A stretch of DNA of 64,000 nucleotides from Kudoa neothunni (lineage: Eukaryota > Animalia > Cnidaria): the NCBI GenBank assembly GCA_964304625.1, contig OZ199840.1, positions 4,614,966 through 4,678,965 of the forward strand. Reading direction: 5' to 3'. How positions within the stretch are numbered: position 1 is the stretch's first letter; each line of letters opens with the position of its first letter. Below, piece by piece: positions 415 through 48,381 of this stretch. A model generated the notes under the pieces. It did no database searches. It was not told the origin of the DNA and was given only the letters and a program-made list of their open reading frames with translations. Made by a program: the position numbers and the translations under genes.

Positions 415-3400
415 GACTGTAGCTATGTTGGTGGCTCTGAGTGAGAAATATGGTTTATGATATTTTCTTAACTATCACTGAAGAATTTTGGTGATTGTTA
501 GATCAAGGTTGGAGGATAATAACGTCGTTTTCAATCTTGATCGAAGCGATTTTTTGATTATTTTATCATTTCTGCCGTATATTTTCTAACGATGGTTTAA
601 GCAAACTGCATGAGATAGTTCACACAACCAATGACTTACGTGGTTACAGAAAATTTTTAATATCAAAGTTATAATTAAGGGGGCGAACAAGCAATTTTTT
701 AATTGTTAAAAGATCCATTGTTATGTGAAATTAAACAGAACCAATAACTACCTTATATTGCACATAATTATAAGTTAGATTTATTAACTTTATTGACGAA
801 ATAGACCGCCATTTTCAACAAGGTCAATGAGTTCATGTGTGAACGATCTCTTTTGTGGATTTTTTCGCTATTAGAAAAAACCCTCTCTGAGCTCCAATTT
901 CCAGTAGGTCCCGAAAATAACTGTTACCTACTTTCTTAGATTTCGATATTTAGAACCTTCCAATAGTCTAGGGCGGGGATGGTAAGTTCTTGTTCGCTCG
1001 CAAGACTCCAAATTTGCACAAAATACTAATGAACGAACGTGAACGAAATTACAGCCTCAAATTATTTGAACGAACGAAATTGCCATCAATGGTAGAGAGA
1101 CACTATCTTAATTAAAACCTTCACTTAATAGAATGTCGAAGTTATCATTGAATTAATTTAATAATAAAATGTACGTGTAGAAATCCACAGTTTGATAAAA
1201 TTAAAAATCAGCGAATACTTGAGTAAATTGGAGATAATAACAAACTATATTTGATAATTAATTATAAAAAGCTTAAATAATATTTTGATTTGAGAGTTCT
1301 AATTTTTGTTCTTCATGTATCCGAAATAGAAACCTATCCCGATAACCACGATAACAACTGGAACAATCACGGAAATAATTCTAAAGATAAAGATTAAAAT
1401 ACTCAAAATTGATTATTAATACATCGTATTTTTGGATCTAAAAGAAATTAGACAAAATGATGACATATCAAAAGTTACGTTGATTTGTTTGAAGATTCAC
1501 CTATTAAATATTTATAATTAGCATCGAAATATTATGATGGTTACCTTGTTTAATTATTCCAACACCGTAGGTATTTGGATCTTCATTATAGAATAGAGTC
1601 AAATGGTAATCGTGTATATCTTCAACTTCTGTAATTGTGAATTCCTTGCAACGAGGTAATTGAGTGCAACCTTTACCAACAACCATGCATTTTTTCACGA
1701 TGGGATTTGAGGGTTCTCCAGAATTTTTTAACTGCCATTTGCATAACGCATTTTCGTCCAAACCTTGAGGTAAAGTAGTGCTAACAGTCAATGTTTTATC
1801 GACACGTGTGATCACCACTATTAATTGTTTATTGAGATCAGTGGGTTGTGAAGGCAATGGGTCTAAAATGTAATTTTAAATAGCATTAGTAAATTTTTTA
1901 ATTTTCGTTGTAGTATTAATTCAATTTTAAAATTGGTTATATAAAAATTTATGAAGAAATACTTTTGGGTATATTTATTGAAACTTCTGTGGACCTTCCA
2001 ACAGCAGTCACCGAAACTTGATAATCTTTGTCTGATTCGTATCCTTCACTAAAAATGATATTGCTGCATAAGGGTGGTGCTTGGCACGATGAGATTGTAT
2101 TTGTATTGGTGGCAGTTGCTGCATTTACGTTTCGTTGGTCTCCTGATGATCTAGCCACCCCCATTTTTGATGTTGATACGAGAGTAGAACTTCCAGCAGC
2201 TCTTGTTGGAGTTCGTGATGGACATTCGTAAATTAGTCCATAATCTTCTCCTTGTTTAACTTTAACTTTGTAATGACATACGGCTGCTGGGTAAGGCGAT
2301 GATAAGGAACCTGCGACTTTAAAACCTTTATCCAACATTTGTTTTTCAAGTGTAAGTGTTGACAAAGCTTAAAAATTATTTAATTATTATTTTATGAAAA
2401 AATATGTTACCAGTTCTGAATTGGTGAACTTTGAAACCATAATCTTTGTGTGCAACAACTTTGAGATCATAATCGGTTCCTGGAGATAACCCCACGATAG
2501 TTTGAGACTCCCCACAATATCCTCTGCATGGATAACTATCAACGCACATTGCACAAACATACGTATCTTTCCCTCGCGGGCTTAGATAGTAAGCACATGT
2601 GGTACTAGTTTTTGAAATCGATGTTTCAACATTAAGTGCCTTAATAGATAGACCTGTATCTCGTATTGTTGGTGTAGCAGTAGGAAATGTTTTTGATTCG
2701 TCGTTCGCTAAATTAAATATTCATGTAATTATTATGTAGATATTTTTATACATTGACTTGTTCTGAAGAATATATGTTCTTTAAAACTAGCTGGGATTTT
2801 ATTGTTGCTTCCAGGTGCATTTGTTGCTGCGGCAACTTCGAGAATATAAGGTTTACCAGGTGCAAGCTGGATTATTGTTAATGAAGTGGCGCAATCTGTG
2901 GCACATGGTGATGTACCAGAAGTATTGCATTGTGCTCTAGTGGCGGCGGTAGTAGTAGGCATTGGTTTGTCAGCCGCGTAATAATTTACAGTACATTCGG
3001 AAAATTTGGTCTCAACACCTTCTTGTTGAAATAAAGCTACATTTAACGTGACACCAACTGTTGAGTACGATGATAACAATTTCCCAGTGTCATTTTCAGC
3101 ATCAGTTTCCGTAACAACTAAGAGCGTATTATTTAAAAACAACTTAATCAATATTACCATATTTCTTTTGTATGTAGCCAGAATATTCGGCTCCATTTGC
3201 TTGGAGCGGAAAATGTCTGGACTGAACTAAAACTTCAACAACCACTTCTGATGTCTCAAAAATAAGCTCAACGTCGTTACATGGTGCATAACAATCTTTA
3301 TTTTCGCCGCCGCAATTTGATTTGTAATCATTAGTACTACCTTGAGGAATGCCGGTTGACGCTTTTTTAATACTGAACTTACAAATTTCAAATGGAAATT

Positions 3401-4814
3401 TGTTAGTAAATTTTAATAAATATTTAGTTTTTTCTTTATTGTATGTCACATAATATTGAGGTACATAAACGTCCGTCTTCATTAATGTGTATCTATTTTG
3501 AAGTTTATAAAAGAAACTTGGATAGTTCGTGCATTTCATTTCATAATGGGGGATCATTAAATCAAATTCTACTTTATTATCATTATTCGTATCATTTGCT
3601 TCGATACAACTTCCATCAGCTGTTCCATCGGCATATTTAACACCCTTGTAATATATTGGGCAATCGACGTTTTTGCATGTTATTGTGCTAAATTTTAATT
3701 TATTTTCGGTTGTGGTAGTTATTGTAACTTGCGGATTTACCAATAAAGCTAATAAAATTTTAGATAGATTGAAAAAACCCGTAAATTACGTATCTCAAGT
3801 CCGAAGATAGTTGGGTCTGTAACTTTTGTATTAACGACTTCAGTAGTATCTGCAACAAAAACTTCCACATATTTGGTTCTCGGAGAAAATTTATCGTATG
3901 CAAATCTTATATCATCTCCTGTGCATGTCCTAACACACTGTCCAACACCAGAACCAGTCTTATTTTCTGGACACGAATCGATTTCTCCATAAACATTCCC
4001 AGGCTCATTTAACTTTTGTATATGACAATGTTTTGAAGTATAATCAGTACCACTTAATACTAAATTAACTTTCATTTTATCATCATGTTTCACAATCTTA
4101 TAGGTAAGCATTTTTGTTGCAGTTGTTTGAGGTTGTGGTGCCACCGGCGTGCTAGCTTCGGCTAATAAAGCATATATGGCTAATATTTAATTAATAAAAT
4201 AAATATAGAGTATAAAATTTACAAACAATTTGAAGAAAAATTCCCATTGCATAGACCGAACATTTCATTGTAATGAAGATAATCTATTGACGAAAATTAT
4301 CGTTTTATTTATAAAATATATCGCGAATTCGTTTTAATGAATGTGTAGATGTTGATTAATAAATTATTTTTTCACATTAGTAAAATTTAATAAGGCTTAT
4401 TTGACCTACGTCCATATTTAACATGAAAATTAAGGATCATGTAAGAATCTATGGAAACATTTTTGGGGAATTTACTTTATACTTCAAATATTAACATTGA
4501 AATTTAATAAATCCACGCATTTTATTATTGTGTAAATTATCTTAATATAATCAATTATTTAATTTACAACTTCAAAAAAGTTCTATTCTTATTATAACGA
4601 TTTCTTTCTACTTTCAAAAAACATAAAATGATTTTATATATACCGTGGTCTGGTTTAAAAAAATACATTATTTCATTTGTCAACATATTTTCCATTAACA
4701 TAAAGTAATTTGCTCTTATTTACTTAGAATACAATAATGTATCAAATATGTGAGATTATTCGATAATTTAAAGGTAAAAAAATTTCATCTTAATGTTAGA
4801 CACAAATTTCAGTT
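415..4814 (-). repeat. Left arm of a large inverted segmental duplication (partner 13178..17101 plus 20120..20585) containing surface-protein gene copy A and its flanks
   Basis: The reverse complement aligns by eye. Examples: gactgtagctatgtt (415) vs aacatagctacagtc (20571); 841-880 vs the flanks of the MULE at 17093/20120; caactgaaatttgtgtc (4814) vs caactggaatttgtgtc (13178). Confidence 0.9.
1299..4268 (-). CDS. Surface-protein family copy A: 10-exon type I membrane protein (signal peptide, Cys-rich FN3-like modules, TM, KNKN tail)
   Basis: ATG at 4268 (MKCSVYAMGIFLQIV), with GT-AG introns at the same positions as copy C. ORFs 3749..4144, 3144..3743, 2732..3196, 1949..2365 and 1504..1857 are its exons. 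The final exon is IIISVIVPVVIVVIGIGFYFGYMKNKN*, stop at 1301-1299. No disruption seen. Confidence 0.88.
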
Positions 4815-5249
4815 GTTTATATAGAACCTTTATATATTTTTAATGTTAAATTCATCCTACATACGATGAGTACAAATCAATCCATCTATATAAGTGATGG
4901 GTATATCTCAAGGCAGCGGCTATGTTACAGGCAATTAATATCACTAAAACTAGCCAGTTGAATTTACTGAAAATTTATATATTAATATAATCCATAACGG
5001 GAAATTTATTTATAAATTTTTAAGCATATACGCATATGTTATGCAGATGGCCGTACAATAACGAACGTGACTTTATGTTAACAGGTTTATTAACATTAGA
5101 AACAGATTAAAAATCAAAGTATTCGTTTAAAAATGTATTAAACAATTTATAAATCTATAACGACAATTTTTCATGATTATGTGCGTGCGACTCATTAATT
5201 TGTGCGCCAGAATACTGAATCTGAATTCATTAAACGTTAGCATGAGGTT

Positions 5250-8586: not shown

Positions 8587-10190
8587 TAGGGGTTCCCAGC
8601 CGATTTTGCATCATTTACCCCTCAACCGATAACGGGCGTCTGTTCCATTTTAGTAAAACAAATAGCACTAAATATCTTTTTAATGAATAATTATTTTTTT
8701 ATAAATATATCTTAATAATTTCAATAACTATAAGATTTTTGATTTTAAGTGATAAAAAAATATTCATCCTAGCAAAAATATTTAAACTTTTTAGTTTTTA
8801 TGGCGCCATTAGCGGTTAAAACCAATGTATTACCTTTCGTAATACATAATATTAAGTTTTGTTTAAATCAATAAGAACAATTATTTTTATTAATATTAAA
8901 GACTTAAATATATTCCAAATAAATGTTTTGTTGAAAAAAACTTCGTATTTATTTTAAAAGTATTTCTGGAACAAAAACTCTATATTATGTGATAATATAT
9001 TGGACATAGTCGGTCAAAATAATGAAACACACAAAGTTTCCTTTTGTCCTTTAAAATAAGTTTTAAAACTTTTTAAATTATTAAATAAGCAACAAAATTA
9101 TTCGAAGGCTCAAAAAATAAAAAAGATCGTTAAATATATAATGTTGAGGTTTTCGATGCAAATTCACTGTTTCTTTGCTGCTAATTCATTAGCAGCCAAA
9201 CTACGAAATAGGAAATTACTTTGTAGATATTAAATTTTATTTACATTAATCGGTATAATTTTTGGGTGAAATTATTTCCCTGCCAACAAAAATCTCAAAT
9301 ATTAATGTCAATATAATTTTTGTAAACTTAAACATCCTTTCTAGGAATCAAAAATTGATTTCCTATTTAAACTCAATTTTTATTCAAAAATTTGTATTTT
9401 CTAAGATATAACCCTGGAATGAGTTACGTTTAACGCGTAGCCATCATAAAAATTAGAATTTGTTCAGTGTAGCAATGCAGTGTAGAGTTCAAGTATCCAC
9501 ATGATAAAAACACAAAAGAGACCATAAGAAAAGAAATTGTATATTATTTCCACACCGAATATATCATTACAATTGAAAAATAAAAGTAGTAGCGACTGTT
9601 TTTAATAGCACATTTAAAGACACCAAAAATACTAAGCATCAACTTTAAAGAAAAAGTAAAGCAATACATGTAGATCAAGACCATTTTTAGTGAGAACACT
9701 GTTCATTCATTGAAGAAATTAGTTTGTCTATTCTTGGGCTTGTTGGTGACAATGCTACTCTCATATCATCACTGGCGCTCACGCGATTCCTTGTCTTTGT
9801 TTCCATTGTTACCAGTGTTGAAAATCCTGATTCGAAAAGGTAAGTAGACACGAAGAGAACGAGCACTTGGAATGCACGTTGGGTGAAAAGAGGAAATGAA
9901 CCTGAAAGGTTCAGCCAAAAATTTACACCGACCTCCTAAAATTTATTTATGAGAATAGAAGAAGATTGAAGATTAATGAGTTTGTTTTTTTCAGGATGAA
10001 TATCATCTATTTCTGATAATGAAGTAGAAAAGGGTCTCAAAATCCATTTCTCGGTCGGAATCTATCTTTGGAAAAGTAGTCATAAATTGATTCCTCCAAA
10101 TTTCCAAATGTTCAGCGTATTTCTGAGATAGCATTCTTCAGTTTCTTCGCATTTAATATATATAAGAGATGCTCATTTTCATTATATTGA
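8587..10190 (-). mobile_element. hAT (Buster/Charlie/ZBED5-like) element remnant
   Basis: The minus strand at about 9920..9687 reads FWLNLSGSFPLFTQRAFQVLVLFVSTYLFESGFSTLVTMETKTRNRVSASDDMRVALSPTSPRIDKLISSMNEQCSH*, the typical hAT C-terminal dimerisation domain. A hAT-like end taggggttccca lies at 8587. Confidence 0.8.
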
Positions 10191-11560
10191 GAATTTTAAT
10201 TTCAAATAGATGGATTGTTCTTATAAGAATAAAAGCATGATTCTATAATTTCACATGTTTTGCATGATCTAGCTGATTAATAATGATACAACCGCCTTGT
10301 TGGTTTTGTTAAAACTTTAAAAGTTGAGAATTAATGATAAGCTTGATAATCTTGTGTATTTAGAATGGTGTTTTTTCCGAATTAATAGCGAGAAATTTTT
10401 CTTTTAAATTTAATTTTTGGAATTAAATTATAAACAGATTGAGATTTACAAATGTTCGATTGGGTAAGAAAAAGCAAATGATCCACGTAAGAACCATGAC
10501 ATATACGGGCGGGTGCGCGAGTATTTAGAATGAAGTTGTTATTTTACTTTTAATTTAATCTAGGCATTCGTGGTTTCATCTTATTTAATCATTTATCTCT
10601 ATATTTATTTCAATTTTTAACAATGATGCAATTAGATTCTATTACAGCTGAAGAACGGAATAAAATATTATTGTAAAAAACGAGTTTAAAATTTTAATTT
10701 CTAATAATGACGAAAAGATATGATAACTAAATCTAAAACATGCAATTGGTTCCAATATATTATTCGCTTTTAATACTTATTTATAATTATAGGCACTTTT
10801 CGGTATTTAAAAACAACTTTAATTACAATATTAAAATTTTTACAATTAAACATAATTTTCAATAATTAATAATGATGTTTTAGGTTTAAAATTTTGTTAG
10901 CGGTTTTCTCTTGCTAAATTTAAGAGGTATTTAATTAATAATGGAAGATATTTATCATTGGGTTTTTTAAACCGTTGTTTCCCACATTAATAAAAATACA
11001 AATTTATACATCGTTTATAATAAAAAATATAACACCTATAACAAATTTATTGAAAAATTTTTAGCATAATTATTTAACTTGTTCGAAATTATTTATTTTC
11101 ATCATAATGACCAACGAACCCACTCTATGGTGTAATATTGTAATATAACTTTTTCTCTTTATTTGTCTATAATTTAATTAATTGATGAAAACCTATTTCT
11201 CAAAGATAAATTTTACATTAAAAGTTATATAAAATTAAAATATTATAGATTTCAGGAATACAAAATAAAATATTCCTTTGCAGAAGAACAAATTTAAATG
11301 ATCTTGTGCAAGTACAACAAAAACTTTCGCCTCCTATAATAATTATCTTTTTATATGTAAAGATTCGCTTAAACAGAAAAAACATCCATATAACTGTTAG
11401 ATTGCGCAGACAATAAAACAAAACTTAGTAATGTTTCGAGATTAAATTAGTGTATGATTATTTTCAAGAAGGTTATACGTGAAAATTATTTTTCTATTAC
11501 ATCATTTTAATATTTCTGTTAAGTTCTAGATATACTTTAATCCATATGCATAGTCACGTG
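10180..11560 (-). repeat. Internal fragment of the TA-flanked CAGTCAACAACGG-ended element family (other copies 20581..22170 and 53655..56822)
   Basis: The reverse complement matches about 55480..56625 and 21600..22170. ORF 11218..11421 is nearly identical to ORF 21823..22011. Confidence 0.8.
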
Positions 11561-12602: not shown

Positions 12603-13724
12603 ATCTAATGAAAACTCGTCATTTGCTCCAAAACATAGTTCTACTGTGCCCCAGGAATAGCAGACCTTAAGAAATTATTGAAACATGCCTTTCTTCAAAA
12701 ACATCTTAATATTTTTGTGTGGGACACTTAAATTTTAGAACTTCGATATTTTATCAAATTCTATTGTTTCCCACAATCCTCACATAACGCGGGTGTTTTC
12801 CTCAAATGTTTTTATCCTGCAAAAATTTAAAACTAGCCTCTTCTGAAGAAGTTATCGATGAAACGAAATCGGAACTCATTTTGGAGCGATTAAAATCTGT
12901 GTAATCTCCTTAATCCGGGTCCACAATTCACCACTAATGTCCTTTTTTTAATACGAACAATCGTGCAAAAAAGAAATGTGTAAAAACACATGCTCGAGGG
13001 TGTTTTATAGGTGCTGCATACTTTTAATTACCGACAATAATTATACTAATAATGATATAATGATTATCACTAGTTTCATACTGTGCATACACCTTATTTA
13101 CAGGAATAAAAGAGGGTATTAAAAGCGGACTGTAATTAATCAGGATTATGTTTATGTCGCAATAGTTCACATGTGCCCAACTGGAATTTGTGTCGAATAT
13201 TAGGAAGAAATTTTTTTACATTTTAATTATCGAATAATCTCACATATTTACTACATTGTTATATTTTAAGTAAATAAGAGAAAACTACTCTATGTTAATG
13301 AAAAATATGTTGCAAAATAAAATGTGTTTTTTAAACCAGACCACGATATATATATATAAAATCATTCCATGTTTTTTGAAAGTAAAAAGAAATCGTTACA
13401 ATAAGAATAAAACTTTTTTAAAGTTATAAATTAAAAAATTGATTATATTGAGATAGTTTACACAATAATAAAACGCGTGGACCTATTAAATTTCAACGTT
13501 ACTATTTGAAGTATAAAGCAAATTCCAAAAAAATGTTTCCACAAGTTCTCACGTGATCCTTAATTTTCATGTTAAATATGGATATCGGTCAAATAAACCT
13601 TATTAAATTTTACTAATGTTAAAAAATAATTTATTAATCAACATCTATACATTCATTAAAACGAATTCGCGATATATTTTATGAATATAACGATAATTTT
13701 CGTAGGATGATTAACCTCATCAAA

Positions 13725-16692
13725 ATGAAATGTTCAGTCTATTCAATGGGAATTTTTCTTCAAATTTTTTGTAAATTTTATACTCTATTTATTTTATTAA
13801 TTAAATACTAGCCATATATGCTTTATTAGTCGAAGCAAGCACACTGGTGGCACCACAACCTCAAACAACTACAACTAAAATTCTTACCTATAAGATTGTG
13901 AAACATACTGATCAAATGAAAGTTAATTTGGTATTAAGTGGTACTGCTTATACTTCAAAGTATTGTCATATAAAAAAGTTAAATGACGCTGGGAATGATT
14001 ATGGAGAAATCGATACGTGTCCAGAAAATAATACTGGCACAAATACTGGACAATGTGTTAGGGCTTGTACAGGAGATGATATAAGATTTGCTTACGATAA
14101 ATTTTCACCAAGAACAAAATATGTGGAAGTTTTTGTTGCAGATACTACTGAAGCCGTTAATACAAAAGTTACAGACCCAACTATTTTCGGACTTGAGATA
14201 CGTAATTTAAGGGTTTTTCAATATATCTAAAATTTTATTAGCTTTATTGGTAAATCCGCAAGTTACAACAACTACCACAACCGAAAATAAATTAAAATTT
14301 AGCACAATAACATGCAAAAACGTCGATTGCCCCATATATTACAAGGGTGTTGAATATGCTCCTGGAACTAAAGGAGGAAGTTGTATCGAAGCAAATGATA
14401 CGAATAATGATAATAAAGTAGAATTTGATTTAATGATACCCCATTACGAAATGAAATGCGCGAGCTACCCAAGTTTTTTTTATAAACTTCAAAATAAATA
14501 TACATTAATGAAGACGGACGTTTATGTACCTCAATATTATGTGACATATAATAAAGAAAAAACTAAATACTTTTTAAAATTTACTAATAAATTTCCATTT
14601 GAAATTTGTAAATTCAGCATAAAAAAAGCATCGACCGAAATTACTGAAAGTACAACAAATGATTACAAATCAAATTGTGGCGCCGCAAATAAAGATTGTT
14701 ATGCACCATGTAACAACGTTGAGCTTATTTTTGAGGCATCAGAAGGGGTCGTTGAAATTTTAATTCAATCAAGACATTTCCCGCTTCAAAAATTCGGAGC
14801 TGTATACTATGGATACAAACAAAAAAAATATGGTAATATATATTCATTTGTTTGAAATATTATATTTTTAGTCGTGACCGAGACTGATGCAGCTGATGAC
14901 TCTGGCAAATTGCTATCAAATTATTTAGCAACTGGTGTCACGTTAAATGTTCCTTTATTTAAACCGAGCGATATTAACACCAAATTTTCCGAATGTACCG
15001 TAAGTTACTACGCTGCTGATAAACCAATGCCTACAGCTACCATTGCCACTTCAACTGGAGCAAAATGCAGTAGTACTTCAGAACCAACATCATGTCTCGC
15101 AGACTGTGCCACTTCATTAACAATAATCCAGCTGACACCCGGTAAACCTTATATTCTTGAAATTGCTGCAGCAGGAACTGCACCAGGAGAAACCAATAAA
15201 ATCCCAGCTAATTTTAAAGAACATATATTCTTCAGAACGAGTAAAATTATGAAAGTTCCTAATGATGACGTATATATTTAATTTAGAGAATGACGCAGAA
15301 AAAACATTTCCAATTGTTTCACCGACAATACGAGATACAGGTCTATCTATTAAGGCACTTACTGTAGAAACACCGATTTCCAAAACTAGCACCACATGTG
15401 CTTATTATCTAAGTCCCCGAGGAAAGGATACATATGTTTGTGCAATGTGCGTTGATAGTTATCCATGCAGAGGATATTGTGGGGAGTCTCAAACTATTGT
15501 AGGGTTATCTCCAGGAACCGATTATGATCTCAAAGTTGTTGCGCATGAAGGTTATGATTTCAAAGTTCACCAAATCAGAACTGGTATTATATTTTTACCA
15601 AAAATAAATGAACAATTTTTAAGTTTTGTCAACACTTACACTTGAAAAACAAATGTTGGATAGAGGTTTTAAAGTCACAGGGTCCTTATCGTCGCCTTAC
15701 CCAGCAGCCGTATGTCATTACAAAGTTAAAGTTAAACAAGGAGAAGATTATGGACTAATTTACGAATGTCCAGCACGAACTCCAACAAGAGCTGCTGGAA
15801 GTTCTACTCTCGTATCAACATCAAAAATGGGGGTGGCTAGATCATCAGGAGACCAACGAAACGTAAATGCAGCAACTGCCACCAATACAAATACAATCTC
15901 ATCGTGCCAAGCACCACCTTTATGTAGCAATATCATTTTTAGTGAAGGATACGAATCAGATAGGGATTATCAAGTTTTAGTGACTGCAGTTGGAAGGTCC
16001 ATTGAAGTTTCAATAAATATACCCAAAAGTATTTCCTCATAAATTTTTATACAACCACTCTTAAAATTGAATTAATACTACAACGAAAATTAAAAAATTT
16101 ACCAATGCTATTTAAAATTATATTTTAGACCCATTGCTTTCACAACCCACGGATCTCAATAAACAATTAATAGTGGTGATCACACGTGTCGATAAAACCT
16201 TGACTGTTAGCACTACTTTACCTCAAGGTTTGGACGAAAATGCATTATGCAAATGGCAGTTAAAAAATTCTGGAGAACCCTCAAATCCCATCGTGAAAAA
16301 ATGCATGACTATTGGTAAAGGTTGCACTCAATTACCTCGTTGCAAGGAATTCACAATTACAGAAGTTGAAGATATACACGATTACCATTTGACTCTATTC
16401 TATAATGAAGATCCAAATACCTACGGTGTTGGAATAATTAAACAAGGTAACCATCATAATATTTCAATGTTAATTATAAACATTTAATAGGTGAATCTTC
16501 AAACAAATCAACGTAACTTTTGATATGTCATCATTATTTCTAATTTCTTTTAGATCCAAAAATACGATGTATTAATAATCAATTTTGATTATTTTAATAA
16601 TTATCTTTAGAATTATTTCCGTGATTGTTCCAGTTGTTATCGTGGTTATCGGAATAGGTTTCTATTTCGGATACATGAAGAACAAAAATTAG
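13725..16692 (+). CDS. Surface-protein family copy B (intact, 10 exons)
   Basis: ATG at 13725 (MKCSVYSMGIFLQIF; an in-frame upstream ATG is at 13707). Exons correspond to ORFs 13847, 14247, 14874, 15262, 15626 and 16134, plus two micro-exons and a TM exon ending MKNKN* at 16692. All splice sites are GT-AG and in phase. Confidence 0.88.
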
Positions 16693-17101
16693 AACTCTCA
16701 AATCAAAATATTATTTAAGCTTTTTATAATTATTTAGAAAATATAATTTTTTATAAACTTGGAATTATTTCCATCTTATTTAACTATTCGCTGATTTTTA
16801 ATTTTATCAAACTGTGGATTTCTACACGTACATTTTATTATTAAATTAATTTAATGATAACTTCGACATTCTATTAAATGAAGGTTTTAATTATGATAGT
16901 GTCTCTTCCCTCCAAGGATGGCAATTTCGTTCGCGTTTGTTCATTAGTACTTTATGCAAATTAGGAGTCTTGCGAGCGATCGCGAACTTACCACCCCCGC
17001 CTTAGACTACTGGAAGATTCTAAATATCGAAAGCTAAGATGCTAGTAACAGTTATTTTCGGGACCTACCGGCAACTCGAGCTCCGAGTGTTTTTTTTCTA
17101 G

Positions 17102-20100
17102 GGAAGTGGCTATATCTCGGGTAATCAATATCTCTAAAACTACTCGATATTGTTTGCCCATATTTCATATATCATCTAATGTTTATCTAACTTAATTTTT
17201 TGTAAATTTTTGAAAAATTAAAAAAAATTATTTTTTCTCTGTGTGACCATACACAAGTCAAACAGCAGTTGGGCACGATTTTTTATTTTTTTAATATAAT
17301 TTCATCAATTAACGTTTTATACACAAAATATAGAAATAAAAATAAATTTCTGAGTTATCTGTAACTTAAGAGCGCAATTTTTCTTTCTAATTAGCTTGAC
17401 ACAGAATGAGTTCAAATATGTTTGCAATTGGAAAACGATTTCTTTCTTTCGAAGAACTCGATAATGCTATAAAAAATTACGATGAGTCAAACTTTTGCAA
17501 TCTTTATAAATATCAAGCGAGGAATATTTCGAATATTCGGAATAGAATAACAAAATCAATTAACCAATCTCTGCGGTATTATGAAATTACATATCGTTGC
17601 ATTTTCAGTGGCAAGAATGAAACAAAATCCGATGGAATTAGAAAAAAACCGACATTAAAGGGAAACTGCCCCGTGGTTTTATCTCTTAGGACCTCTGTTG
17701 ATGGTGTAACACTTGAAATACGTTCTAGTATATTAGAACACAATCACGATTAAGTGCAGTGCTATATCGAAATCTCCCAAAACAACGAAAAATTGACCTA
17801 AATAAACCAAATCTAGTGAAATTAATTCATCTTAAGGTCAATAAAAAATTAATTCAAAATAAAATTTACAACGAAACGGATAAAAACATCCGTTTGAAAT
17901 CCATCCACCATATTAGAGCAAACAAAGACTCATTTTGTGATAACCTATGTGTAATAGAGAAAATGTTGAAAGAAGATTTCAAATGTTACGTTAAGATTTT
18001 ATATGATAAACATAAAGTCGTTAATGGAATTTTTTCGCTGACGACAAAATGAAATCATTTTAGGAATTTTATGCTGAGGTTATGTTCGTTGATGCAACTT
18101 ATAAACTCCTTAATTCAAGGTAACTTTTGAAAACGGATGAATAATTTTATAATTTTAGTGCCCCGTTATACATATCTGCTGGGGAGTATTCTTTTGGTTT
18201 GACTCACATTTCGAATGCCTGCATTCTCTACGAAGAGATTGAAGATTCCATCCAATGGTTTTGTAATACTTTGGCAGAATTGATACCAAACTTATCAAAA
18301 AATGTACATACCATTGTTACAGATAAGGATGAAAAGCTAAGAAAATGTCTCAAATTAAGTTCTCCACTATCATCATTCATTTTATGTAAATTTCATGTGA
18401 ATCAAATTTTTCAAAGACATATCACCGTTAACAAATTTGAAATATCTTCTACTAAAAGACAAGAGATTTTAAGTTGTTTACAAAAAATGATGTACCCGAC
18501 TGACTACAATAAATATTTACATTACGTTGACCAGATTCACGATTTTAAAAATCCCAAATTAAGTGAATACTTCAAAAGAAATTGGGAAGGAATATACAAT
18601 GAATGGGTTATTGGTATTAGCAACACGAAAAATGTTTACGACAACGAAACCAATAATCGCCTTGAGGTAATAAATTCCAAAATTAAGTGATGTCCAAAAA
18701 TTCAGCTCGTTGACTAATTTCATCTAAGGTTTTTTTTAAATTCTAAGTTCACTTAGAATTGAAAGGGAAGTTTCTTCAATTAATCAACTGTATTATGAAT
18801 CAAACGATATTCTCAACAACAAGCAGGTTCTACACTATAAAGAATTTCTGACGAAGTATGCATTTATCATGCATCAAAAAAAACATAAATTCTTAGGCAA
18901 TTCTGCATTATCCTCTAATTCAAATGAAATCACAACTCGATAAATGTGTCTTTGTTTATTTTATCGCTCATTTTCATTACCATGTCGCCATATTCTAAGT
19001 TACAGGTTATCAGAGAAACTCCCGTTATTCTGTGAAACATTATGCAATGATCGATGGAACATGGCATACGGAATGAAGTTTTTAAATGCGGAATCTACAG
19101 CTCAAAATAATACAGAAAATCTTCCTACTGTTGTTCTTGAAAAGAAACAAAAAATTAACATAAAGAAATTTGGAAAAAAGTTGAAGTACGCGTCAAATTT
19201 TACAACCAAACTAACCAACACAACTTCCGAATTTTGCGGAGAATTTTTCGAAAAATCAATAAATCTATTGGAAAAAATAATTAGAAGTCACGATGTCATG
19301 GTTATCGATCAGTTCCTTGATACATGTGATTTTTGTTTATAAATGAAATATTAAATTTTATATAATTAAAGATGAAACTGAATTTCAAGAAAATCTGTAA
19401 AATTTATAATTTTACTTTAACTAATAAAAATTAGGATTCATCGATAAATTTAATAGAAATCTCACCTACCAAAATGCCAAAACTTAATTCCAGTGATGAT
19501 TTTGGTCCTCTAGAAGAACAAATTGATTGTAACGATGAATCAAACGTCATCGTAGAAGAACCTCAATTAAAAGGTTAAACCTAAAAAAAATTATGCTAAT
19601 TTTTGTTTAGATATAGTGATTCCTTCTAAAGTTAAATCGATTGGTCGACCACAAGGAAGTCGTTTAACTGCTATCGGAATTATAAAGAAAAAGAAATAAA
19701 GTTATAACTTTAAAATTAAATATATACAAAAAATTTAATTTTGAGAATAATCCTCTACATGTATCATATGAAAGCTGTTTTATTGAGTGATCGCTTAAAC
19801 TAATATTTAAATCCATTATTAGTTTTATTTCATATAACGTGAAGAATATTTATTTCTTAAAAAAACAAACATTATTATTATTATTTCTATATTTTGTGTA
19901 TAATGACGCTAATTGATGAAATTATATTAAAAAAATAAAAAATCGTGCCCAGCTGCTGTTGGACTTGTGTATGGTCATACAAAGAAAAAATAATTTTTTT
20001 TAATTTTTCAAAAATTTACAAAAAATTAAGTTAGATCAACATTAGATGATATATGAAATATGGGAAAACAATATTGGGTAGTTTTAGAGATATTGATTAC

Positions 20101-20119
20101 CTGAGATATAGCCATTACC
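17102..20119 (+). mobile_element. Full-length Mutator-like element (MULE) with ~240-bp TIRs, 9-bp TSD and a disrupted DDE/SWIM transposase
   Basis: TSD TTTTTCTAG at 17093-17101 and 20120-20128. TIRs ggaagtggctatatctcgggtaatc.. and ggtaatggctatatctcaggtaatc.. (reverse complement). Motifs VMFVDATYKL, IVTDKD, LCKFHV, ETNNRLE and SWIM finger CLCLFYRSFSLPCRHIL. In-frame stops are present. The empty site is visible in the duplicated arm at about 871-879. Confidence 0.95.
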
Positions 20120-20580
20120 TTTTTCTAGTTGCGAAAAAATCCACAAAAGAGAACGTTCACACATGAACTCATTGACCTTGTTGAAACTGCAGGTCTATTC
20201 CATCAATAAAGTTAATATATCTAACTAATAATTATGTGCAATATGAAATAATTATTGATTCTTTTTAATTTCACACCACAATCGGTCTTTTTAACAATTA
20301 AAAAATTGCTTGTCCGCCCCCTTAATCATAACTTTGATATTAAAAACTTTCTGTAACCACCTAAGTCATTGGTTATGGGAACTCTCTCATGCAGTTTGCT
20401 TAAACCCTCGTTAGAAAATATACGGCGGAAATGATAAAATAATCAAAAGATCGCTTCGATCAAGATTGAAAACGACGTTATTATCCTCCAACATTAGTCT
20501 AGCAATCACCAAAATTCTTCATGGATAGTTAAGAAAATATCATAAACCATATTTCTCACTCAGAGCCTCTAACATAGCTA

Positions 20581-22170
20581 CAGTCAACAACGGTTGTTGC
20601 ACATTTTTCGTTGTGTGTCATTATTTTATCGTTTTATAAAGTACAGTTCTATCTCATAAGTCTTTTAAGCTATTAATGAAATATTTGGGATTATTTATTT
20701 AAGAATTTTTTTACAAATACTAGAAAATGGATATTACGCACTAATTTTAGTCACCGTTAAACTTAACACTATCTTAAAATCGAAGTGTATCGTCATTATT
20801 TGATGATTTTTATTTTAAAGAACTAGAATGAAATTAAACGTTTTTCTATTTTCATATTAATAAAAATGATCCAGGGTTAATTCATTAAATAACAAAAGTT
20901 TAACTAAAAGTCAATGCAGAAAAACGGAAATATTTTATAATTATAAATTTTATCCACGTGCATAAATTTATTAGTATCTTTGTTTTATTTCAGGATTGCG
21001 CGTTGTTTTTTAAAACTGAGTAGATTCGTTGATCTCAAACTATATGTGTGGTCATTGTACATAAATAAAAATTTAATATTAGAAAGTTTTGTACGCTTTA
21101 ATTATTAGATTGTTTCAGGGCTAAATCAACTCTAATATTTTTCATAAAATAGATGATAAAATTACGGAATTAATTTCTTCATTTGAGTGTAGTTTAATCG
21201 CTGATCAAATCTAAATTTTTTTTAAAAACAACGTAGAAAGTATTTTTATTATATTTAATGTAAATAACGTAACTACGACAAATGGAGAACGATAACAATG
21301 TGGATCGCATTTAAATATTTTTTATATAAAACTGTGGATTTAATTACGAAATACAAATTGATTTCTTTGATACATATATCCCTGAGAGCCTAATATCAAT
21401 GATCAAATTGATGAAAAATCAAATATACATGGTCCGATAGAATCTTGGAGGAATCCGACCAACGACAAGCGATTATGACAAAATAATTAAATTTAGCATT
21501 CTTTCGGTTTAATGAATCAATTAAAATCAATAATTATTGATTAATACTAAACTAAAATATCTATCTTTACAATAGGCGAGAAACGTGTATAATGGTTCAA
21601 ATGGATTAACTCATTCACTAAATCTTATATGAAATATTAAAATGATATATTAAAAAAATAATTTTCATGTATAACCTGTTGGAAAATAATCATACACTAC
21701 ATTAATCCCGAAGCATTACTTAGTTTTGTTTTATGTTTTCGCAATCTAACGGTTATATGGAGCAGAATTTTTATTTTATTTCGTTTTAAATCCCCCAAAA
21801 AGATCGAACTAGCATTATATGGATGTTTTTTCTGTTTAAACGAATCTTTACATATAAAAAGATGATAATTATTATAGGAGGCGAAAGCTTTTGTTGTACT
21901 TGCACAAGATCATTTAAATTTGTTCTTCTGCAAAGGAATATTTTATTTTGTATTCCTGAAATCTATAATATTTTAATTTTATGTAACTTTCAATATAAAA
22001 TTTATCTTTGAGAATAAGATTTTCATCAATTAATTACATTATAGATAAATAAAGAGAATAATTATATCACAATATTGTACTATAAAGTGGGTTTGTTTGT
22101 CATTATGATGAAAATAAATAATTTCAAAAAGTTAAATAATTATATTAAACATTTTTCAAATAAATTTATC
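20581..22170 (+). mobile_element. Truncated copy of a TA-flanked CAGT-ended (Tc1/mariner-type) non-autonomous element, fused to the promoter of copy C
   Basis: TA followed by CAGTCAACAACGGTTGTTGCAC at 20581 matches the TIR of 53655..56822. The segment 21015..22170 matches about 54890..55830. Similarity to the gene promoter begins near 22172. Confidence 0.75.
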
Positions 22171-32104: not shown

Positions 32105-35100
32105 TTATTGTTGGGTTACGTTAGTATCGCAGCAATTTTCCAACAATTGTTCCCAGCGTTCTTCAAAGAAGGAAGACATACTTTTACATGCAATATAGAT
32201 CTAAAAATTCAATAAGTGATCATTTTCCAACTAAATATATCTCAAATATGCATACCTCAGATTCGGATTGATTGAAACGTCTGCAGTTTTCAAAAATAAG
32301 ACGTACGTCGGCAACAAATTCATCGCGATCTTTGTATCTTTACAACAAAAAAGTCAGAACTAATGATCGAAAAATGAAAAATCGATTACTCAAGCGCTTT
32401 CAATTTCAGGTCTATTTGATGCAGATCAATTGGTTTTCTGATAACTTGAAGGTATAGAGGATATTTTTCAAGATCAACAGGTTTTGTGAATTCTTCCGCA
32501 TTTGGGTGGTCGTATAGTTCATGCAATAAAACGTGGCATGGAGTAAACATCTCACAAATGTCCATTTTGAATTTTTTCGAAATACGTTTTCTTCCAGATT
32601 CAACCACGGTTTTTGATGTGCGGCAAGCCTCGCAACAACTGGGACAGATGTAGAGGTCATTAGCGCTACTTTGCAATGCACTCATCATATCAACACATTG
32701 TCGATGGTGATAATAGAGACAAAGGGAACATCGTATAGGTTCCATCACGTTTTCATCTTCAATCTCGTTTTCATTCACGCTCTCATTCATATTATCAATT
32801 TTAGTATCTACAGCCAAGTCATCTTCATTGTCGGATTGCAGTTCACATTCAATCATTTGTTTAGGTGGATTTTGGAATGTGGATGTGTTACATTCACGAC
32901 ATATGGTGAACGAATTTTCTTGAGCATTCAGGCAGATCAAGCTCTTACAATGATTACAACTCCAGGTCTTTTGATCCACAAGCGAGAGATCTTCTTGGAA
33001 GCCTTGACAATACAAATGATGGGATTTGTGGCAGTACATGCAGCTTATAACGCTGTCAAAATTAACGTTAAGATGACACTTGTAGCAGAATTTGTTGTGG
33101 ATTGGTGATACTAATGGTGGCGGTTGAGGAATGTTGCTGCCATTTTTGTTGTTATTGTTATTATTATTGACATTGGACGAAGCGGGTTCAAGAGATACGT
33201 TCAACTGCAACGAAGTGAGAACCAACTCTAAATCATAGCAAGCATCACCGCAACTTTCAATGAAATCAATCAAGCTTTTAATGTATCGATTTTTTGCCTC
33301 TCTGGAGTTGGTTTTGGCTTTTTTAACCAAAGCAATGAGACCTCTGGCGTCAAGCATGTTAATAAGTTGTGCCAGTTTGGATTTGAATACAGGAACAAAA
33401 TCTTTGCTCTTTAAGTCTGTCGAAAGATCGATGGTTTCGAGTTCATGATCATCAAAAACGTTTTTCTTTCGAATAAAATCCACAAACTGATTGTACTGAA
33501 GATGGACAATTCGATTCACTGTAACACCATAATTTTTCTGTACCCAAGGGGAAGATTGGACCACATAGAACGTTTCATCAGAATTAAATGAACTGGAGAG
33601 ATCTCGATAGAATTTACTCGGTGAAAGTGCATCATCAGACATATTTTTGATGTTACGATTCAAATTTTTCGACAACATTCTTTCTCTCATTCCCAGATTA
33701 TTTAGACTTTTTAATAACGCGCGAAAATCGTTCATATTTTCAATCAGCATAAGGCGAGTGAATCCGTTAGTTTGCTGTGTTGTCAACGAGACTGAATCTT
33801 TATTATCATCGTTATCCAATTCAAGCTTGATATCTTCGTCATTACGATGTTCAGTTGCAACCGATGGATCAGCAAAAGGATGAGCAAGTGGAATATGTTC
33901 TTGTTTGACATCAGTGGCGAGAGTATCCTTATTGATGGTATTGTTTTGTTCGGTAATAGAATCACAAGTAATATGAGTGATTGGATTGTCATTTTGGTGT
34001 GGTTCGGGTGAAGCAGGAGATTTACTGTTAAGGAAATTGTCCAATTCAAGTTCACCAGGATTATGTTCTACGAACACACAACTAGAATGATAGAGGATGG
34101 AATAGAAGCGCGAAAAACGATCTTGTCCAATAAACGGTCCTTTAAATCGCCTGAAGAAAGCATACCACCAATCTTTAAGCACCTTCTGAATGTTATCAAG
34201 ATAATCGCTGAGTTGTTTGCACTCCTCCATTGTTTTAGGTAGAGGCGTGGTATTAGCGTCAAATTTGACGGCCTCCAATAGCAACGGATCACTCACACTA
34301 ACCACATTGTGGTTGTTTTGGATGGAGTTTTTATTTCTGTTGTTTCTCCTAGAGGAATTGTGATCATCGTCATCGTCTTCCTCATCATCAATTTCGTTAT
34401 CCTCATCATAAGCAGCCGAGTTTTCATCTTGATCTTCCACGTCAACATTGGCGTTGTTTGGTGGTCCTTCCGCGGTGGCTTCAGCATTTTCATCATTATT
34501 GCCACCATTTGGAGGGTTGTCAGCTGTTTCTCCTAGAGGTGATTCTGACTGTTGTTCCGCTGTTGCAATATGTGAAGAATTTGTAGTCGTTTCTAATTGG
34601 GGTGATTCCGACTGTTGTTCCACTGTTACAAAGTTTGAAGAATTGATCGTTGTTGCCAATTGAGGAGATTCTGATTGTTGATCCACTGTTGCAATATGTG
34701 AAGAATTGGCAGTTATTTCCAACTGAGGTGATCCTGACTGTGGTTCACCAATCGCAACAGGTTCTGTAACGATTAGATGGCCTTCCGTCTGATTATTTTG
34801 ATTAGCAGTAACATTCTCCCCCTCATTAGCTTGAGTCGAGGCGTTTTGTTTTCTTGCCAACAAGGTCATATGACGTTTGAGTTTTCTGATGAAACTTTCC
34901 ACATTCCATTTAGCCCCTTTGATTGCTTGGAAATCATTTGAAATCACATCCAAATTGTTCAAGATGCAAGGAGTTTTGGTAAGCGTATTGTTAAGGAACA
35001 ACAACACAGTAGATTTCAATAGAGGGCTCAATTTGAGAGGGGATGGGTTAGATTTGAGTGCATGAACAAGTGCTTTTAGATCTCTGTTGTAGCTGAGCGA

Positions 35101-38100
35101 GGACGCGAACTTCAAATGAGCAATGCTCTCAAGATAATCTTCAACGAACAGACGTATGATGGTTAGCATGTTGATGCTGTTAAACCGTTGGCTCACATCG
35201 AATTCGATTTTCATATCGTAACAAGCTGAGGGTAGTGGGAGCTTTTGATTCAGATAGGTCTCAAGTAGACATTCACACAAACACAAAAAGGGGCTGTTAA
35301 CCAAGTCCAACACGTCACACTCACCAACATCATCACACTTGTCAAAATTATCACTATCATTGTTAGTTGTGGTAAGTGTAATGGCGAAAATATCCTGTAT
35401 CACACTGCCAAAGGATGGCAGTACACTTAGCCGATTTTCCAATGGGAACAACTGATAAAATTCTTGCACAAATTCGAACACGGACGCTAAATTGGACATT
35501 GTAGCACACGCCTCCGCTTCAGACATCGACTCTCTAGCGGCGCAAATCAAGTTGTCAATCTGTAGATCACTGAACATAGGTATGTGGTTGGGTTGATCGA
35601 TTGTTTCATCGTCGAAAGCTTGTTTTGGCATTTTTACATATTTATTGCCAGGTCCATTCACAACACGCTCTTTGGAATTGGACGTTTTACCAACACGTTT
35701 GGATTTTGATTTAAGAAGTGAAATGGATCCGTTTCCCATAGAAATTGATTTTTTGTTTTTTCCCGAGCCACCAGCAGATAAATTAGACTGGTCATCATTA
35801 GGTGTTTCGTTAAACTTCATTCGTTTAGCTTTCGAGGGGGTTTTGGAGGTGGCGCCTTTAGGGCGTCCTCTTTTTTTGGTGATAACCAACTGTGGTGGAT
35901 GTCCAGAAGTGACCATGGTAGCAATTGCTGTTTGTTGAGAGTTGTCTAAAGCCTCCGTATTGTTCGATTGATTCAAAAACACTTCATCTCCGTTATTTGA
36001 CAAATAAGAGTTCGTGAGACCATCATCGAACTCGCCAACTGAATAACTTTCTGGTCCACCACTAATAGATTGATGCCCGAGATCGTGAGAGGTTGATGGT
36101 CCTGGTTTTTCTATTAAAGAATCAGATGTTTTGGAGTTTTTCTTTAATCGTGGCACTTTGCCTATTGTACGAGTGTCCATATTGAAATGGATAGTGTTAT
36201 CAAAGTTGAAATTTTCAGGAATCAATTGAAAATTGAAACCCTCAGGTTGATTTTTGAGAAATCGTGATACCTCCCGCTTCGATCTCAATTCATAATCACC
36301 AATTGCTTCTGGTACCGCGTAGACAACAAACTTTTTCAGCACCTTAGTTTCGTATCCATATTTGGATCGGGAGATTTTGCGCTTGAATCCATAATCCATA
36401 GGTTTGAATTGGTCTTCGATAGGTAAAGACTCTGGCAACAATGACATCGACTCATTCAAATGAGCACTTGTGTTTGGTTCTTCGTTAGCTGTTGTTCCAA
36501 TTAAAGCGTTACTTGGCAACTTCATTTGATGGAAACTCGATGCAACCTTGTGTGACTGTCCAATTATGGGAAAATTATTACTGGAAGGTCCCCCCACCAA
36601 AGATTGCATCGGATTGAACACTCCGTTCTTGATATCGGAGGTGGCTGGCTGGTGATAAGAATGAAGAGTAGGAATAGGATAGGGAAGAGATTGGTCTATT
36701 GTGACTAAAGAATCGCCAGTTGCTATATTGCCACTAGTGTTGTTTGGTAATGCTAAAAGGTGAGTCATTAAAATATTTTTTAATGAACCTATAAACAAGA
36801 ATGCACAAACTCCGGCACTCATTGAACCTTCATTAAATTCAGATTAATGGTATTATTTTAAATGAAACGAAAAAAATCATTCGATTATTTAACTTTGATT
36901 GGTTTATTTAAATATTGAATATATCAAGAACACCTAATGAAGCTATTAAACAAATTTATTGGAGTTTTTTATTGTATAAAAACCATCAAAAAAAACCCTC
37001 TAAATAGGCAAAAAGATTTATTACTATTGGTCACCTCACCATGTACCCCATGTACCCCATGTACCCCATATGCCCCATGTGACCCATGTGATATAGAGAA
37101 AGCGTTTTTATAATAGAAGTTCATGTCACAATTTTAATTACTTCTTCCTGAGTGTGTGTGTGTGTATGTGTGTGTATAGAAGAGGAGAATAAAATCATAC
37201 AGGTATTGGGCGGATTTATGATTTAAAAATTCGTTGAACAATGCTGATTCGAAGTTAAGGTTCAATTAAAATAAGATTAATGATTAAAGTGAGTTTTATA
37301 AACGATGCGAAATTATATTTATATTTTGTGTAAAAATCAATGTTTCCATAGGAAGAATAAAAACTAAAAAAACTTTGTGTCAACGTTTATTTTACACACG
37401 TTAAAGCTGATAATGAGTACATATTAATGGGCAATTTAAACCGCACTTCACATATTACATATGGGCACACAACTACTTTGCCCACCAAAAGTGTATCTCA
37501 CATTTAATTCAGCTTATTTTTATTTCCCAGCTAAAACGACTGAAATTCGAAACAAAGTTGATGACAAGAATAGAAAATTTAATAACGCCTGGTCAGAAAA
37601 ATATGGTTTTATTCAACGGGGGACGAATATTATTTGTTTTCTATGTCATTCGCTATTCAATTTAAAGCATTCAGTACACAAGTTATTTATCGATTATTTT
37701 GAATATTGCGCTTCGAAATTCGAAAATTCATTCAAAGTGCGAGCTATAACTTTAGTTTTAAACCTCCTGACCCCTGGAAACTTTCAAAGATTAAAATTTG
37801 GCTCAACGCTCCAAAAGTTTGTGCACCAATAGCTCAAAACTTACCACTATTCGAAGAGTGAATAGGAGTGCCACTCATACTTCCGACGCCACCACCAACG
37901 CAAATAGTGGGATTGTTATTGTCCAAACAATCCGGCCCACCACAAACATTCATGTTCTTCGGAAGATACATCAACGGTGGTTGATACATTTTGAGTGGTT
38001 CTTTGTGTGAGGACAATTCCAGTGATGGCAATTGAGTATTGTTACCAATTTCATTGTGAGGATTAATAGGGTTGATAGGAGTGGTCTTAGTGTTTTCGTT

Positions 38101-41849: not shown

Positions 41850-43450
41850 TCGATTTCGATTTTGATGAAATTCGTAGAAACAGCTCGCTTTACACTTAAA
41901 GAATTCGATTTTCGTGACTTATTTGACATAGTTCGTATTTATTGCATGTGGATGTGACTTTAGGGATATGCCCTCTACATTGTCGGATCGGATATCCTCC
42001 GAGAGACAGAGAGGAAGATATAATTTTCCGGCTTATTGAATTTTTCAGTTAATTATTTACTAATAGTGATGGTCTATCGCTCTTAACTTTATGTTCGTTC
42101 CCTTTTCATGAAATATTAAAGACTCACGAACTGAACTGGTGAAATTCATCATTATGTCTAATATTTCGCTCTCATTTATTCTTCGTGATTTACTGTTTTT
42201 CTTGTATAACAGCCAAGAGTTACTCATTGCTGCATTTATTTCCCAATAACATTTCTCATGTAATATTTACTATATTTATTGCTTAGAAGATAAAAAGATG
42301 ATAACATATTTGATGTATCCACTCCGTCTATATTTTTATTGTATTCAGATACAACATGAGGATATTTAATACTTAATTTGGACCATTTTTCTCGTCTTAC
42401 GATAGAATCATTTAATTTGTGAAACCGGTTTTCACATCAGACGCGTCAAAGCTAAGTAACAACTGATCCATCATATAAATGAGATAAAAGGATTCCGTTA
42501 TTTGAATCTTTTATATATTCATATAAATCGTGGCCTTTTTTTCTTTAACTCCTTTTCATTTGAAAATGGACATCCTCTACGTCGGTTAGATCCAATGGTC
42601 CAAGTGGAATAAATCAATCGTCCCTTTAGAATAAGTTGCATTGGTTACTTGATAAACCAATTATCAAATTAAACAAAGTATGCAGAATTATTAGGATGTA
42701 TTTCACATAATTTGATAACATAATCACCAGAAGAGAGATTACAACTTCTGGACACTTTCATGGGTGTTCCAGCATAAAGAAGGAAATCGTGAACTATACT
42801 AAAAACTCCACATCTAGTTAACATTTTAAACCCCCATTTGGTAGGCTTTTTAGATATACGTTTCTGTGAACAGCATCTACCTTTAAATGGTATCATTTGT
42901 TCATTTACATATAACTGACTTTCAAGTTGGATCATTAAGCAAGTTGATCTAAAGAGGTTTAAAAATGGTCTTATTTTCGAAAATCTATCAAGTTCATTAT
43001 AAGATTATTGGTGACCATCTCGTCATTGTTTTTGAAATAATCTCAAAATCTACTGCGTGTGAACACGAACCCAATAGCAACTGGTTCAAACTTAACATTT
43101 TTTTCGCTAACACCGATATCTAGGCATCCTTATTATATCCATTAAAATGAGAACTCAAATATAGCTTTCTAGTTCATTACTATCAATCTTGAAACAAGAA
43201 TTAGACTACCCGAAATAATGGTTTGTTTGGTTTGTTCAACTATCAAATCTATGAAGGATTCATTGATAAATTGGTTGAAGTAATCGATAAAATTAAAAAT
43301 TCCATTTATTTCCTCAAAATCAATAAAATCAATAATATCATCTAAAGTTAGTTTATCTATTTTCCAATTAAATTTGAAGTTCGAGTTGTATTTTTCTTCG
43401 TCAGTAACCTCATTATAGAAAATAGAGTAGTCATCGCGTTTTTCGAAAGT
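41850..43450 (-). mobile_element. Decayed piggyBac (PGBD3-like) transposase
   Basis: YVNEQMIPFKGR..KKPTKWGFKMLTRCG..IVHDFLLYAG, FDNWF, GTIGSNRRRGCP and YNKNIDGVD fragments, with many stops. Ends not resolved. Confidence 0.8.
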
Positions 43451-46219: not shown

Positions 46220-48381
46220 CTATTTTTTATTCCTGTATTTGAAATAGGAACCTATTCCAACACCCACGATAACAACTGGTAGAATCACGGAAATAATTCT
46301 AAATATAAAGATTAAAATAATCAAAATTGATTATTAATACATCGTATTTTTGGATCTAAAAGAAATTAGAAACAATGTTGACATACCAAAAGTTACGTTG
46401 ATTTGTTTGAAGATTCGCCTATTAAATATTCATAATTAAAATCAACATCAAAATAATATGATGGTTACCTTGTTTTATTATTCCAACACCGTAGGTATTT
46501 GGATCTTCACTATAGAATAGAGTCAAATGGTAATCGTGTATATCTTCAACTTCTGTAATTGTGAATTCCTTGCAACCAAGTAATTGAGTGCAACCTTTAC
46601 CAACAACCATGCATTTTTTCACGATGGGATTTGAGGGTTCTTGCAATATCCTCTGCAAGGATAACTATCAACGCACATTGCACAAACATATGTATCTTTT
46701 CCTCTCGGGCTTAGATAGTAACCACATGTAATGTCGGTTTTGGAAATCGGCGTCTAAACAGCAAGTGCCTTAATAGATAGACTTGTATCTCGTATTGTTG
46801 GTGAAACAGTAGGAAATGTTTTTGTCTCGCTATTACCTAAATTAAATATATACGTAATCAATAGGGATTTTTATAATTTTACTCGTTCTGAAGAATATAT
46901 GTTCTTTAAAATCAGTTGGGATTTTATTGGTTTCTTCTTGTACATCCGTTGCTGCGGCAACTTCGAGAATATAAGGTTTTCCAGCATCAAGCTGTGATAT
47001 TGTTAACGCATCAGTACATGATCTGTTACATAGAGTACCCTCAGCATCGCATGTTGCTTCCATGCTCACAGTAAGCACTGGTTTATCAGCAGCGTAGTAA
47101 CTTACAACACACTGCGTAAACTTTGTATTGACAGTACCAGGATTAAATAAACGTACATTTAATGTGACACCAGTTTCTAAATAATTTGAGAGCAATTTTC
47201 TAGTGTTATCGACAGCATTAGTTTCCGTAATAACTAAAAGGGTATTATTTACAAAATTTAATAAATATTACCATATTTCTTTTGTATATAACCAGGATTT
47301 TCGATTCCTTTTTCTTGGAGGGGAAAATGTCTGGATTGAATTAAAATTTCAACTATCGTTTTTGATGCATCAAAGGTAAGTTCGACGTTGTCGCCTGGTG
47401 CATAACAATCTTTATTTTTCTCACCACAATTTGATTTGTAAACATTAGTATTATCTGTAGCACGTTCGGCTAAAGCTTCTTTAATATTAAATTTACAAAT
47501 TTCAAACGGAAATTTGTTAGTAAATTTAAGTAAATATTTAGTTTTATTTGGGTTGTTATATGTCACACAATACTGGGGTATATAAACACCCATGTTCATT
47601 AAAGTGTATCTATTTTGAAGTTTATACAAGAAACTTGGATAGTTCTCGCATTTAATTTCATAATAGGGTATCATTAAATCTAATTCTACTTCACTGTCGT
47701 CATCCACATCATTTGCTACGATACAACTATCACCAGCTGTTCCACCAGCATATTCAACCCCCTTGTAATATATTGGGCACGCAACTTTTTTGCATGTTAT
47801 TGTGCTAAAATTTCAATTTACGTTGAGCTGTAGTAGTTATTGTAACTTGTGGATTCACCAATAAAGCTAATCGAATCTTAAATAATTTCAAAAAAACATA
47901 AATTACGTGTCTCAAGTCCGAAGATAGTTGGGTCTGTAGTTTTTGTAGCAGCAGCACTATCTGCAACAAAAATGTTGACATATTTTGTTCTTGGTGAAAA
48001 TTTATCGTAGGTTAATCTTATATTGTTTCCTGTGCATGCTCTTACACATTTGTTATTACCATTGTGAGTATCATTTTCTGGGCACGTATCAGTTTCGTCA
48101 TAATCCCCACTAGCCTCATTTAACTTTTTTATATGACAAAAGTTTCCAGAAACATAAGCAGTACCGCTTAATACTAAATTAACACGCATTCTGTTTTCAT
48201 GTTCCATAATCTGATAGGTAAGAACATTAGATGTAGATGCTGAAGCTCTTGGTGCATCTTGTCTCCCTGTCTCAGTTAAGAAGGCGTTTCCACCTGATAC
48301 TTTATATAAAAATTCATAGTAAATCAAAAATTTACAAAACATCGCAATTAGAAGCCCTATTAAGTAGATAAAACCCTTCAT
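46220..48381 (-). pseudogene. Surface-protein family copy D: divergent pseudogene
   Basis: Same exon order, from signal peptide MKGFIYLIGLLIAMF to the TM exon ending YRNKK*. Three lesions: +1 T giving TAG at 47805-47807, TAG at 46754-46756, and an out-of-frame deletion at about 46642 fusing exon 5 (YPCRGYC) to mid exon 7 (EPSNPIV). Confidence 0.88.

Follow-up and report, generated by a model that had tools for sequence, protein, structure and literature searches.

The question raised by this locus is whether a scatter of short open reading frames (ORFs) in the genome of Kudoa neothunni, a tiny cnidarian (myxozoan) parasite of tuna, represents a family of variable surface proteins and, if so, what such a family may do. 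The window analyzed is a stretch of 64,000 nucleotides (assembly GCA_964304625.1, contig OZ199840.1), and 19 ORFs of 80 aa or more fall in four related blocks within it. The original prediction read these blocks as four paralogues of an undescribed family of variable type I surface proteins, and suggested a diversifying coat, adhesin, or self-recognition system by comparison with VSG, MSG, VSP, and the Hydractinia Alr complex. As described below, the observation was confirmed and extends far beyond the window, whereas the interpretation was only partly supported. A variable host-facing coat or adhesin is the reading that fits best, although splicing, surface location, and a host-facing role are inferred from DNA alone and switching of expression is not shown.

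Gene Structure of the Four Copies

Self-comparison of the window revealed the four related blocks, and their boundaries agreed exactly with those originally predicted. The features are as follows.

1299-4268 (-): gene A, 10 exons (4268-4223, 4179-3790, 3748-3158, 3117-2758, 2707-2411, 2367-1963, 1862-1545, 1500-1479, 1437-1423, 1380-1299), 841 aa
4291-4302 (-): conserved CG-N8-CG near-palindrome about 34 nt upstream of the ATG of A, a candidate shared regulatory element
13691-13702 (+): the same upstream element before B
13725-16692 (+): gene B, 10 exons (13725-13770, 13812-14201, 14242-14832, 14872-15240, 15287-15583, 15624-16028, 16129-16446, 16491-16512, 16554-16568, 16611-16692), 844 aa, an inverted duplicate of A with flanks
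17102-20119 (+): MULE transposon inserted in the 3' flank of B, context and not part of the gene
22333-22344 (+): the same upstream element before C
22367-25335 (+): gene C, 10 exons (22367-22412, 22456-22848, 22890-23483, 23524-23877, 23928-24224, 24268-24672, 24772-25089, 25134-25155, 25197-25211, 25254-25335), 841 aa, a mosaic of A-like, B-like, and other tracts
46220-48381 (-): pseudogene D
48404-48415 (-): the same upstream element before D

In A, B, and C all nine introns are canonical GT-AG introns (39-50 nt, with one of 99-100 nt) and no internal stop was found. Introns 1-7 are in phase 1, making each module exon symmetric, and in A introns 8-9 are in phase 2. Each spliced product contains 30 Cys, a hydrophobic N-terminal stretch (signal peptide), seven modules with mostly four Cys each, one C-terminal TM helix, and the tail KNKN. 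A spliced aligner using an A/B/C profile recovered the model of B exactly. The splicing itself is inferred from DNA conservation rather than from RNA. Three points of the original prediction required correction: the S/T stalk is only about 12 residues long and is encoded by two micro-exons (22 and 15 nt), exon 3 carries two modules, and the copies do not form a local locus but belong to a genome-wide family. Interestingly, retention of the last intron (16569-16610 in B, and the same in A, C, and D) would give a stop right after the stalk and hence a secreted ectodomain; myxozoans are reported to retain introns.

D is broken by a frameshift near 47808, an in-frame stop at 46756-46754, and a deletion of about 794 nt at about 46643, spanning late exon 5 to mid exon 7. 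Evidence that D serves as a silent donor was not convincing, as only 30-42-nt identical tracts were shared with A, B, and C in conserved regions.

The copies lie among transposable elements and ordinary neighbors. The MULE has about 240-bp TIRs (95% alike), a 9-bp target duplication, and a transposase in pieces, and it splits the A/B inverted duplication (415-4815 versus 13178-20585). Other nearby sequences are piggyBac-like and DUF659 (hAT-like) transposase remnants (42669-42935, 52046-52816) and an unclassified repeat present three times (10180-11545, 20890-22179, 54790-56625). The neighboring genes include an intronless Piwi (61325-63994, +), a BAZ2-like MBD/WSD/PHD/bromodomain ORF (32386-36822, -), and a tetraspanin (57550-58236, +).

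Family Size and Integrity of the Copies

The genome is 40.26 Mb in four contigs of 17.15, 12.04, 11.05 Mb and, by subtraction, about 18 kb, with a (TAAACC)n array at one end of the 12.04-Mb contig. This agrees with the published K. neothunni genome, for which 40.2 Mb, three chromosomes, an N50 of 12.0 Mb, the same telomere motif at one end, a circular mitogenome, 49-nt introns, and 5,316 predicted proteins were reported (Weber et al., PMC12239612). A search of the genome with exon 3 of B gave 430 candidates, and all 150 that were scored had E below 1e-46, at 42-100% identity, on all three chromosomes. Exon 7 gave 306 candidates. A distant homologue used as query added 51 loci, giving at least 201 copies. 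Moreover, an exact degenerate motif from module 3, which misses a few known copies, occurs 266 times against 35 in the control. The number of copies is estimated at about 250. Clusters lie near chromosome ends and internally.

A further 44 copies were modelled with the spliced aligner, and all keep the module introns at the same positions and phases. Splice ends are overwhelmingly GTA...TAG and the median intron is 42 nt. Eleven copies carry 35 single-base indels but no nonsense codon, and 22 of 38 indels sit at runs of four or more bases against an 18% background. As the assembly came from about 7x k-mer coverage, these are probably consensus errors, and the pseudogene load may be low. Among 48 copies only D has a nonsense codon, so a large pseudogene archive is not supported. 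Just upstream of the window, a near-identical copy (L032:6514; L numbers denote individual loci) carries eight single-base indels and no stop, which is likely assembly error, and a partial copy (L033:2633-3965) covers modules 5-7. Size variants also exist, as members at C1:16870823 and C1:1091250 of the genome (G000) have much longer open frames around exon 3 (about 445 aa).

Predicted Fold of the Modules

Pfam searches gave only faint fn3 hits, below the cut-off, in 22 of 29 exon-5 copies. The exon-5 profile found titin (E 3.9e-6) and fibronectin over the strand E-F motif (L-x-P-G-T-x-Y type), with only the C-terminal third aligning by sequence. The Tyr of the strand-F motif is invariant or near-invariant in exons 2, 4, 5, 6, and 7. 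An AlphaFold2 model of module 1 (pLDDT 84, pTM 0.78) is a beta-sandwich whose best matches are FN3 domains of cytokine receptors and fibronectin at Z 5-7, while Foldseek gave only weak nanobody rows, none at E<=0.001. Exon 3 (pLDDT 69) was modelled as two sandwiches, the second of which (module 3) matches FN3 at Z 5-7 and the first of which (module 2) is of uncertain type. These Z values, all under 8, show fold class and not function, and modules 4-7 are assigned by motif only. The modules, predicted to be FN3-type sandwiches, have a C-x3-5-C pair among the mostly four Cys. Sequence homology among modules found little support: a mixed alignment paired modules 1 and 3, but this was not supported by profile comparison, in which only modules 4 and 5 reached 55% probability.

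Sequence Variation and Recombination

Mean identity among the sampled copies is 45, 67, 52, 66, 54, and 52% for exons 2-7, respectively. The dN/dS values are 0.21-0.56 per exon, highest in exons 2 and 4, as expected of real genes under constraint. In disjoint close pairs, however, the loop between Cys2 and Cys3 has pN 0.32 (pS 0.28) in exon 2 (module 1) and pN 0.39 (pS 0.26) in exon 4 (module 4), against pN 0.14 elsewhere. In exon 2 the loop pN/pS is near 1 (p=0.37). The exon-4 excess has p=0.05 against the loop's own synonymous sites and 2e-5 against those of the exon, although it rests on short, length-variable loops that may be misaligned.

Further analysis of the six closest copies showed that partners switch along the gene (A=C, then A=B, then B=C), with 169 runs observed against 311 +/- 10 expected and a PHI-like p=0.001. 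The 3' halves, introns included, are 92-100% identical among five of them, while the 5' halves are mostly 65-90% identical. This shows patchwise exchange, most simply gene conversion. Family-wide, however, the membrane-proximal module 7 is as diverged (52%) as module 4, and a gradient from variable tip to constant base holds only among close copies.

The Upstream Element

Of 44 copies, 38 have CG-N8-CG, with a consensus close to a palindrome, mostly 33-36 nt before the ATG. Other spacings and control windows gave almost none. The element was absent before Piwi, BAZ2, and two other ORFs in the window, and it is barely enriched genome-wide (272 versus 225 in the control), which argues against a general core promoter. 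It is a candidate for shared regulation, although inheritance by descent alone is not excluded.

Relatives Outside K. neothunni

An HMM of exon 3 searched against 1.84 billion proteins gave 15 hits, and the ten looked up were all unnamed singletons from ENA or Logan. Word-based searches gave one hit each, and the ESM Atlas gave no usable hit. The ten traced hits come from five samples, probably other myxozoans, but the species could not be named. One traced locus, L073 (17% GC), holds a whole gene with the same seven modules, stalk exon, micro-exon, TM, and lysine tail at about 43% identity in exon 3, with an internal repeat inserted in module 6. A second, L072, lacks intron 2 and joins module 1 to module 2 at the predicted junction with the other introns in place, providing independent support for the splice model. 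One sample has at least three deeply divergent members, and its SNF5 is only 41% identical to that of Kudoa, so the family probably predates Kudoa. In both species a family gene lies within about 5 kb of SNF5, though on opposite sides (L074:350-5609 and G000:C3:1356584-1362282), which may be old linkage or chance given 250 copies. The sampled K. neothunni copies form one clade (98/91), pointing to a lineage-specific burst, with the caveat of long branches and biased sampling. No named protein of any animal was hit in these searches, which were run exon by exon. No description of the family was found in the literature searched, including the passages of the genome paper that were searched (PMC12239612).

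Comparison With Known Surface Protein Families

The Hydractinia Alr family is likewise a cnidarian multigene family of single-pass proteins with one Ig-like domain per exon, extra conserved cysteines, an FN3-like domain, and pseudogenes (PMC9546547). Alr proteins have 1-3 V/I-set Ig domains plus one FN3-like domain that lacks the Tyr corner, often have long ITAM/ITIM tails, and are encoded in one complex. Here there are seven modules, no V/I-set Ig domains were seen, the Tyr-corner motif is kept, all modelled tails end within a few residues of the TM without a signalling motif, and about 250 copies lie on three chromosomes. Kinship with Alr is therefore not supported.

The VSPs of Giardia and Spironucleus and the VSP-like genes of Sphaerospora molnari (10.64898/2026.02.11.705288) share with this family a signal peptide, a Cys-bearing ectodomain, one TM, and a short basic tail. 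However, VSPs have >10% Cys and >5 CXC/CXXC motifs, whereas A has 3.6% Cys, one CXXC, and no CXC. The family also has beta-sandwich modules (predicted) and nine introns, and S. molnari has 18 genes. The tail consensus is (K/R)N(K/R)N or KK(K/R)N, which is not the S. molnari motif. One subfamily (L036, L049, L056, L058, L067) ends in KKKN or KKRN, which fits the KKXX ER-retrieval pattern but sits right against the membrane; most copies do not fit it. Kinship with VSP is likewise not supported.

In size and mosaicism the family works like VSP, var, or VSG repertoires, being large and diverse with recombination between copies. As in trypanosome VSG and Pneumocystis MSG archives, which may be promoterless or leaderless with many pseudogenes, mosaics appear to arise by gene conversion and the membrane-proximal part is conserved among close copies. 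Here, however, no GPI signal is present, the predicted fold differs, few true pseudogenes were found, and clusters are both distal and internal. Most copies have their own signal exon and upstream element, so no cassette-into-expression-site step is needed.

Possible Functions of the Family

Taken together, the favored reading, held as somewhat more likely than not, is a Kudoa-expanded repertoire of about 250 genes encoding single-pass rods of seven disulfide-stapled, predicted FN3-type sandwiches. Each rod would be held in the plasma membrane by a TM helix and a short basic tail that only anchors and is too short to signal alone. The frame is conserved, short loops in modules 1 and 4 vary, and variants arise by duplication and by ectopic gene conversion that swaps patches among neighbors. 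The most likely role is a variable host-facing coat or adhesin, with subsets used by stage or clone so that fish antibodies or receptors meet different surfaces. Stage-specific antigens are reported for K. thyrsites and antigenic variation is suggested for myxozoans (PMC8481699). On the other hand, whole-exon dN/dS is below 1 everywhere, and Kudoa sporulates inside muscle cells, partly hidden from antibodies. True clonal antigenic variation in an animal parasite, in which each cell or plasmodium expresses one or a few of the genes chosen through the CG-N8-CG element while gene conversion keeps producing new loop combinations, is possible but less likely than not.

Other explanations remain less likely. 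Self or kin recognition, in which homophilic, isoform-specific adhesion in the manner of Alr, Dscam, or clustered protocadherins sorts cells in cell-in-cell development or between co-infecting genotypes, would suit a cnidarian lineage, the design of one module per phase-1 exon, the tandem Ig-like sandwiches with variable loops, and an element that could serve stochastic promoter choice. This reading is tentative at best, given the lack of any signalling tail, the dispersal over three chromosomes, and gene conversion that homogenizes neighbors. It is more doubtful that the proteins are decoys or co-receptors that capture host cytokines, complement, or cell-surface receptors, or that partner with a signalling subunit, with diversity tracking ligands or hosts rather than antibodies. 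The cytokine-receptor matches of module 1, the short tail, and the possible secreted form are consistent with this idea, but identity is 7-15% at Z values in the range of any FN3 sandwich, no WSXWS-type motif was seen in the consensus, and 250 copies is far more than a decoy role needs.

A structural surface or spore-wall protein amplified for dosage, with neutrally drifting loops and copies spread by transposon-rich duplication, is similarly improbable. It would explain the purifying selection on the frame, the exon-2 loop ratio near 1, and the surrounding MULE, piggyBac-like, and hAT-like elements; however, copies diverge to below 50% identity yet stay intact, loop pN exceeds pS in exon 4, and deeply divergent paralogues also coexist in another species. 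Finally, an artefact of transposon-borne debris or unpurged haplotype copies was considered because the low-coverage assembly needed haplotype purging and some copies carry indel errors. This is refuted for the family as a whole, since copies differ by 10-55% in protein with dN/dS well below 1, splice sites and phases are conserved in another species at 30-43% identity, and no transposase similarity was found, although a few near-identical copies could still be haplotigs.

Implications for Myxozoan Biology

Myxozoans persist in immune fish and change antigens, but the molecules are largely unknown and no vaccine exists (PMC8481699). A genome reduced to about 5,300 annotated genes that spends roughly 5% of that number on one undescribed surface family gives a concrete, testable candidate. 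It also marks the conserved modules (2, 3, and 5) as possible diagnostic or vaccine targets.
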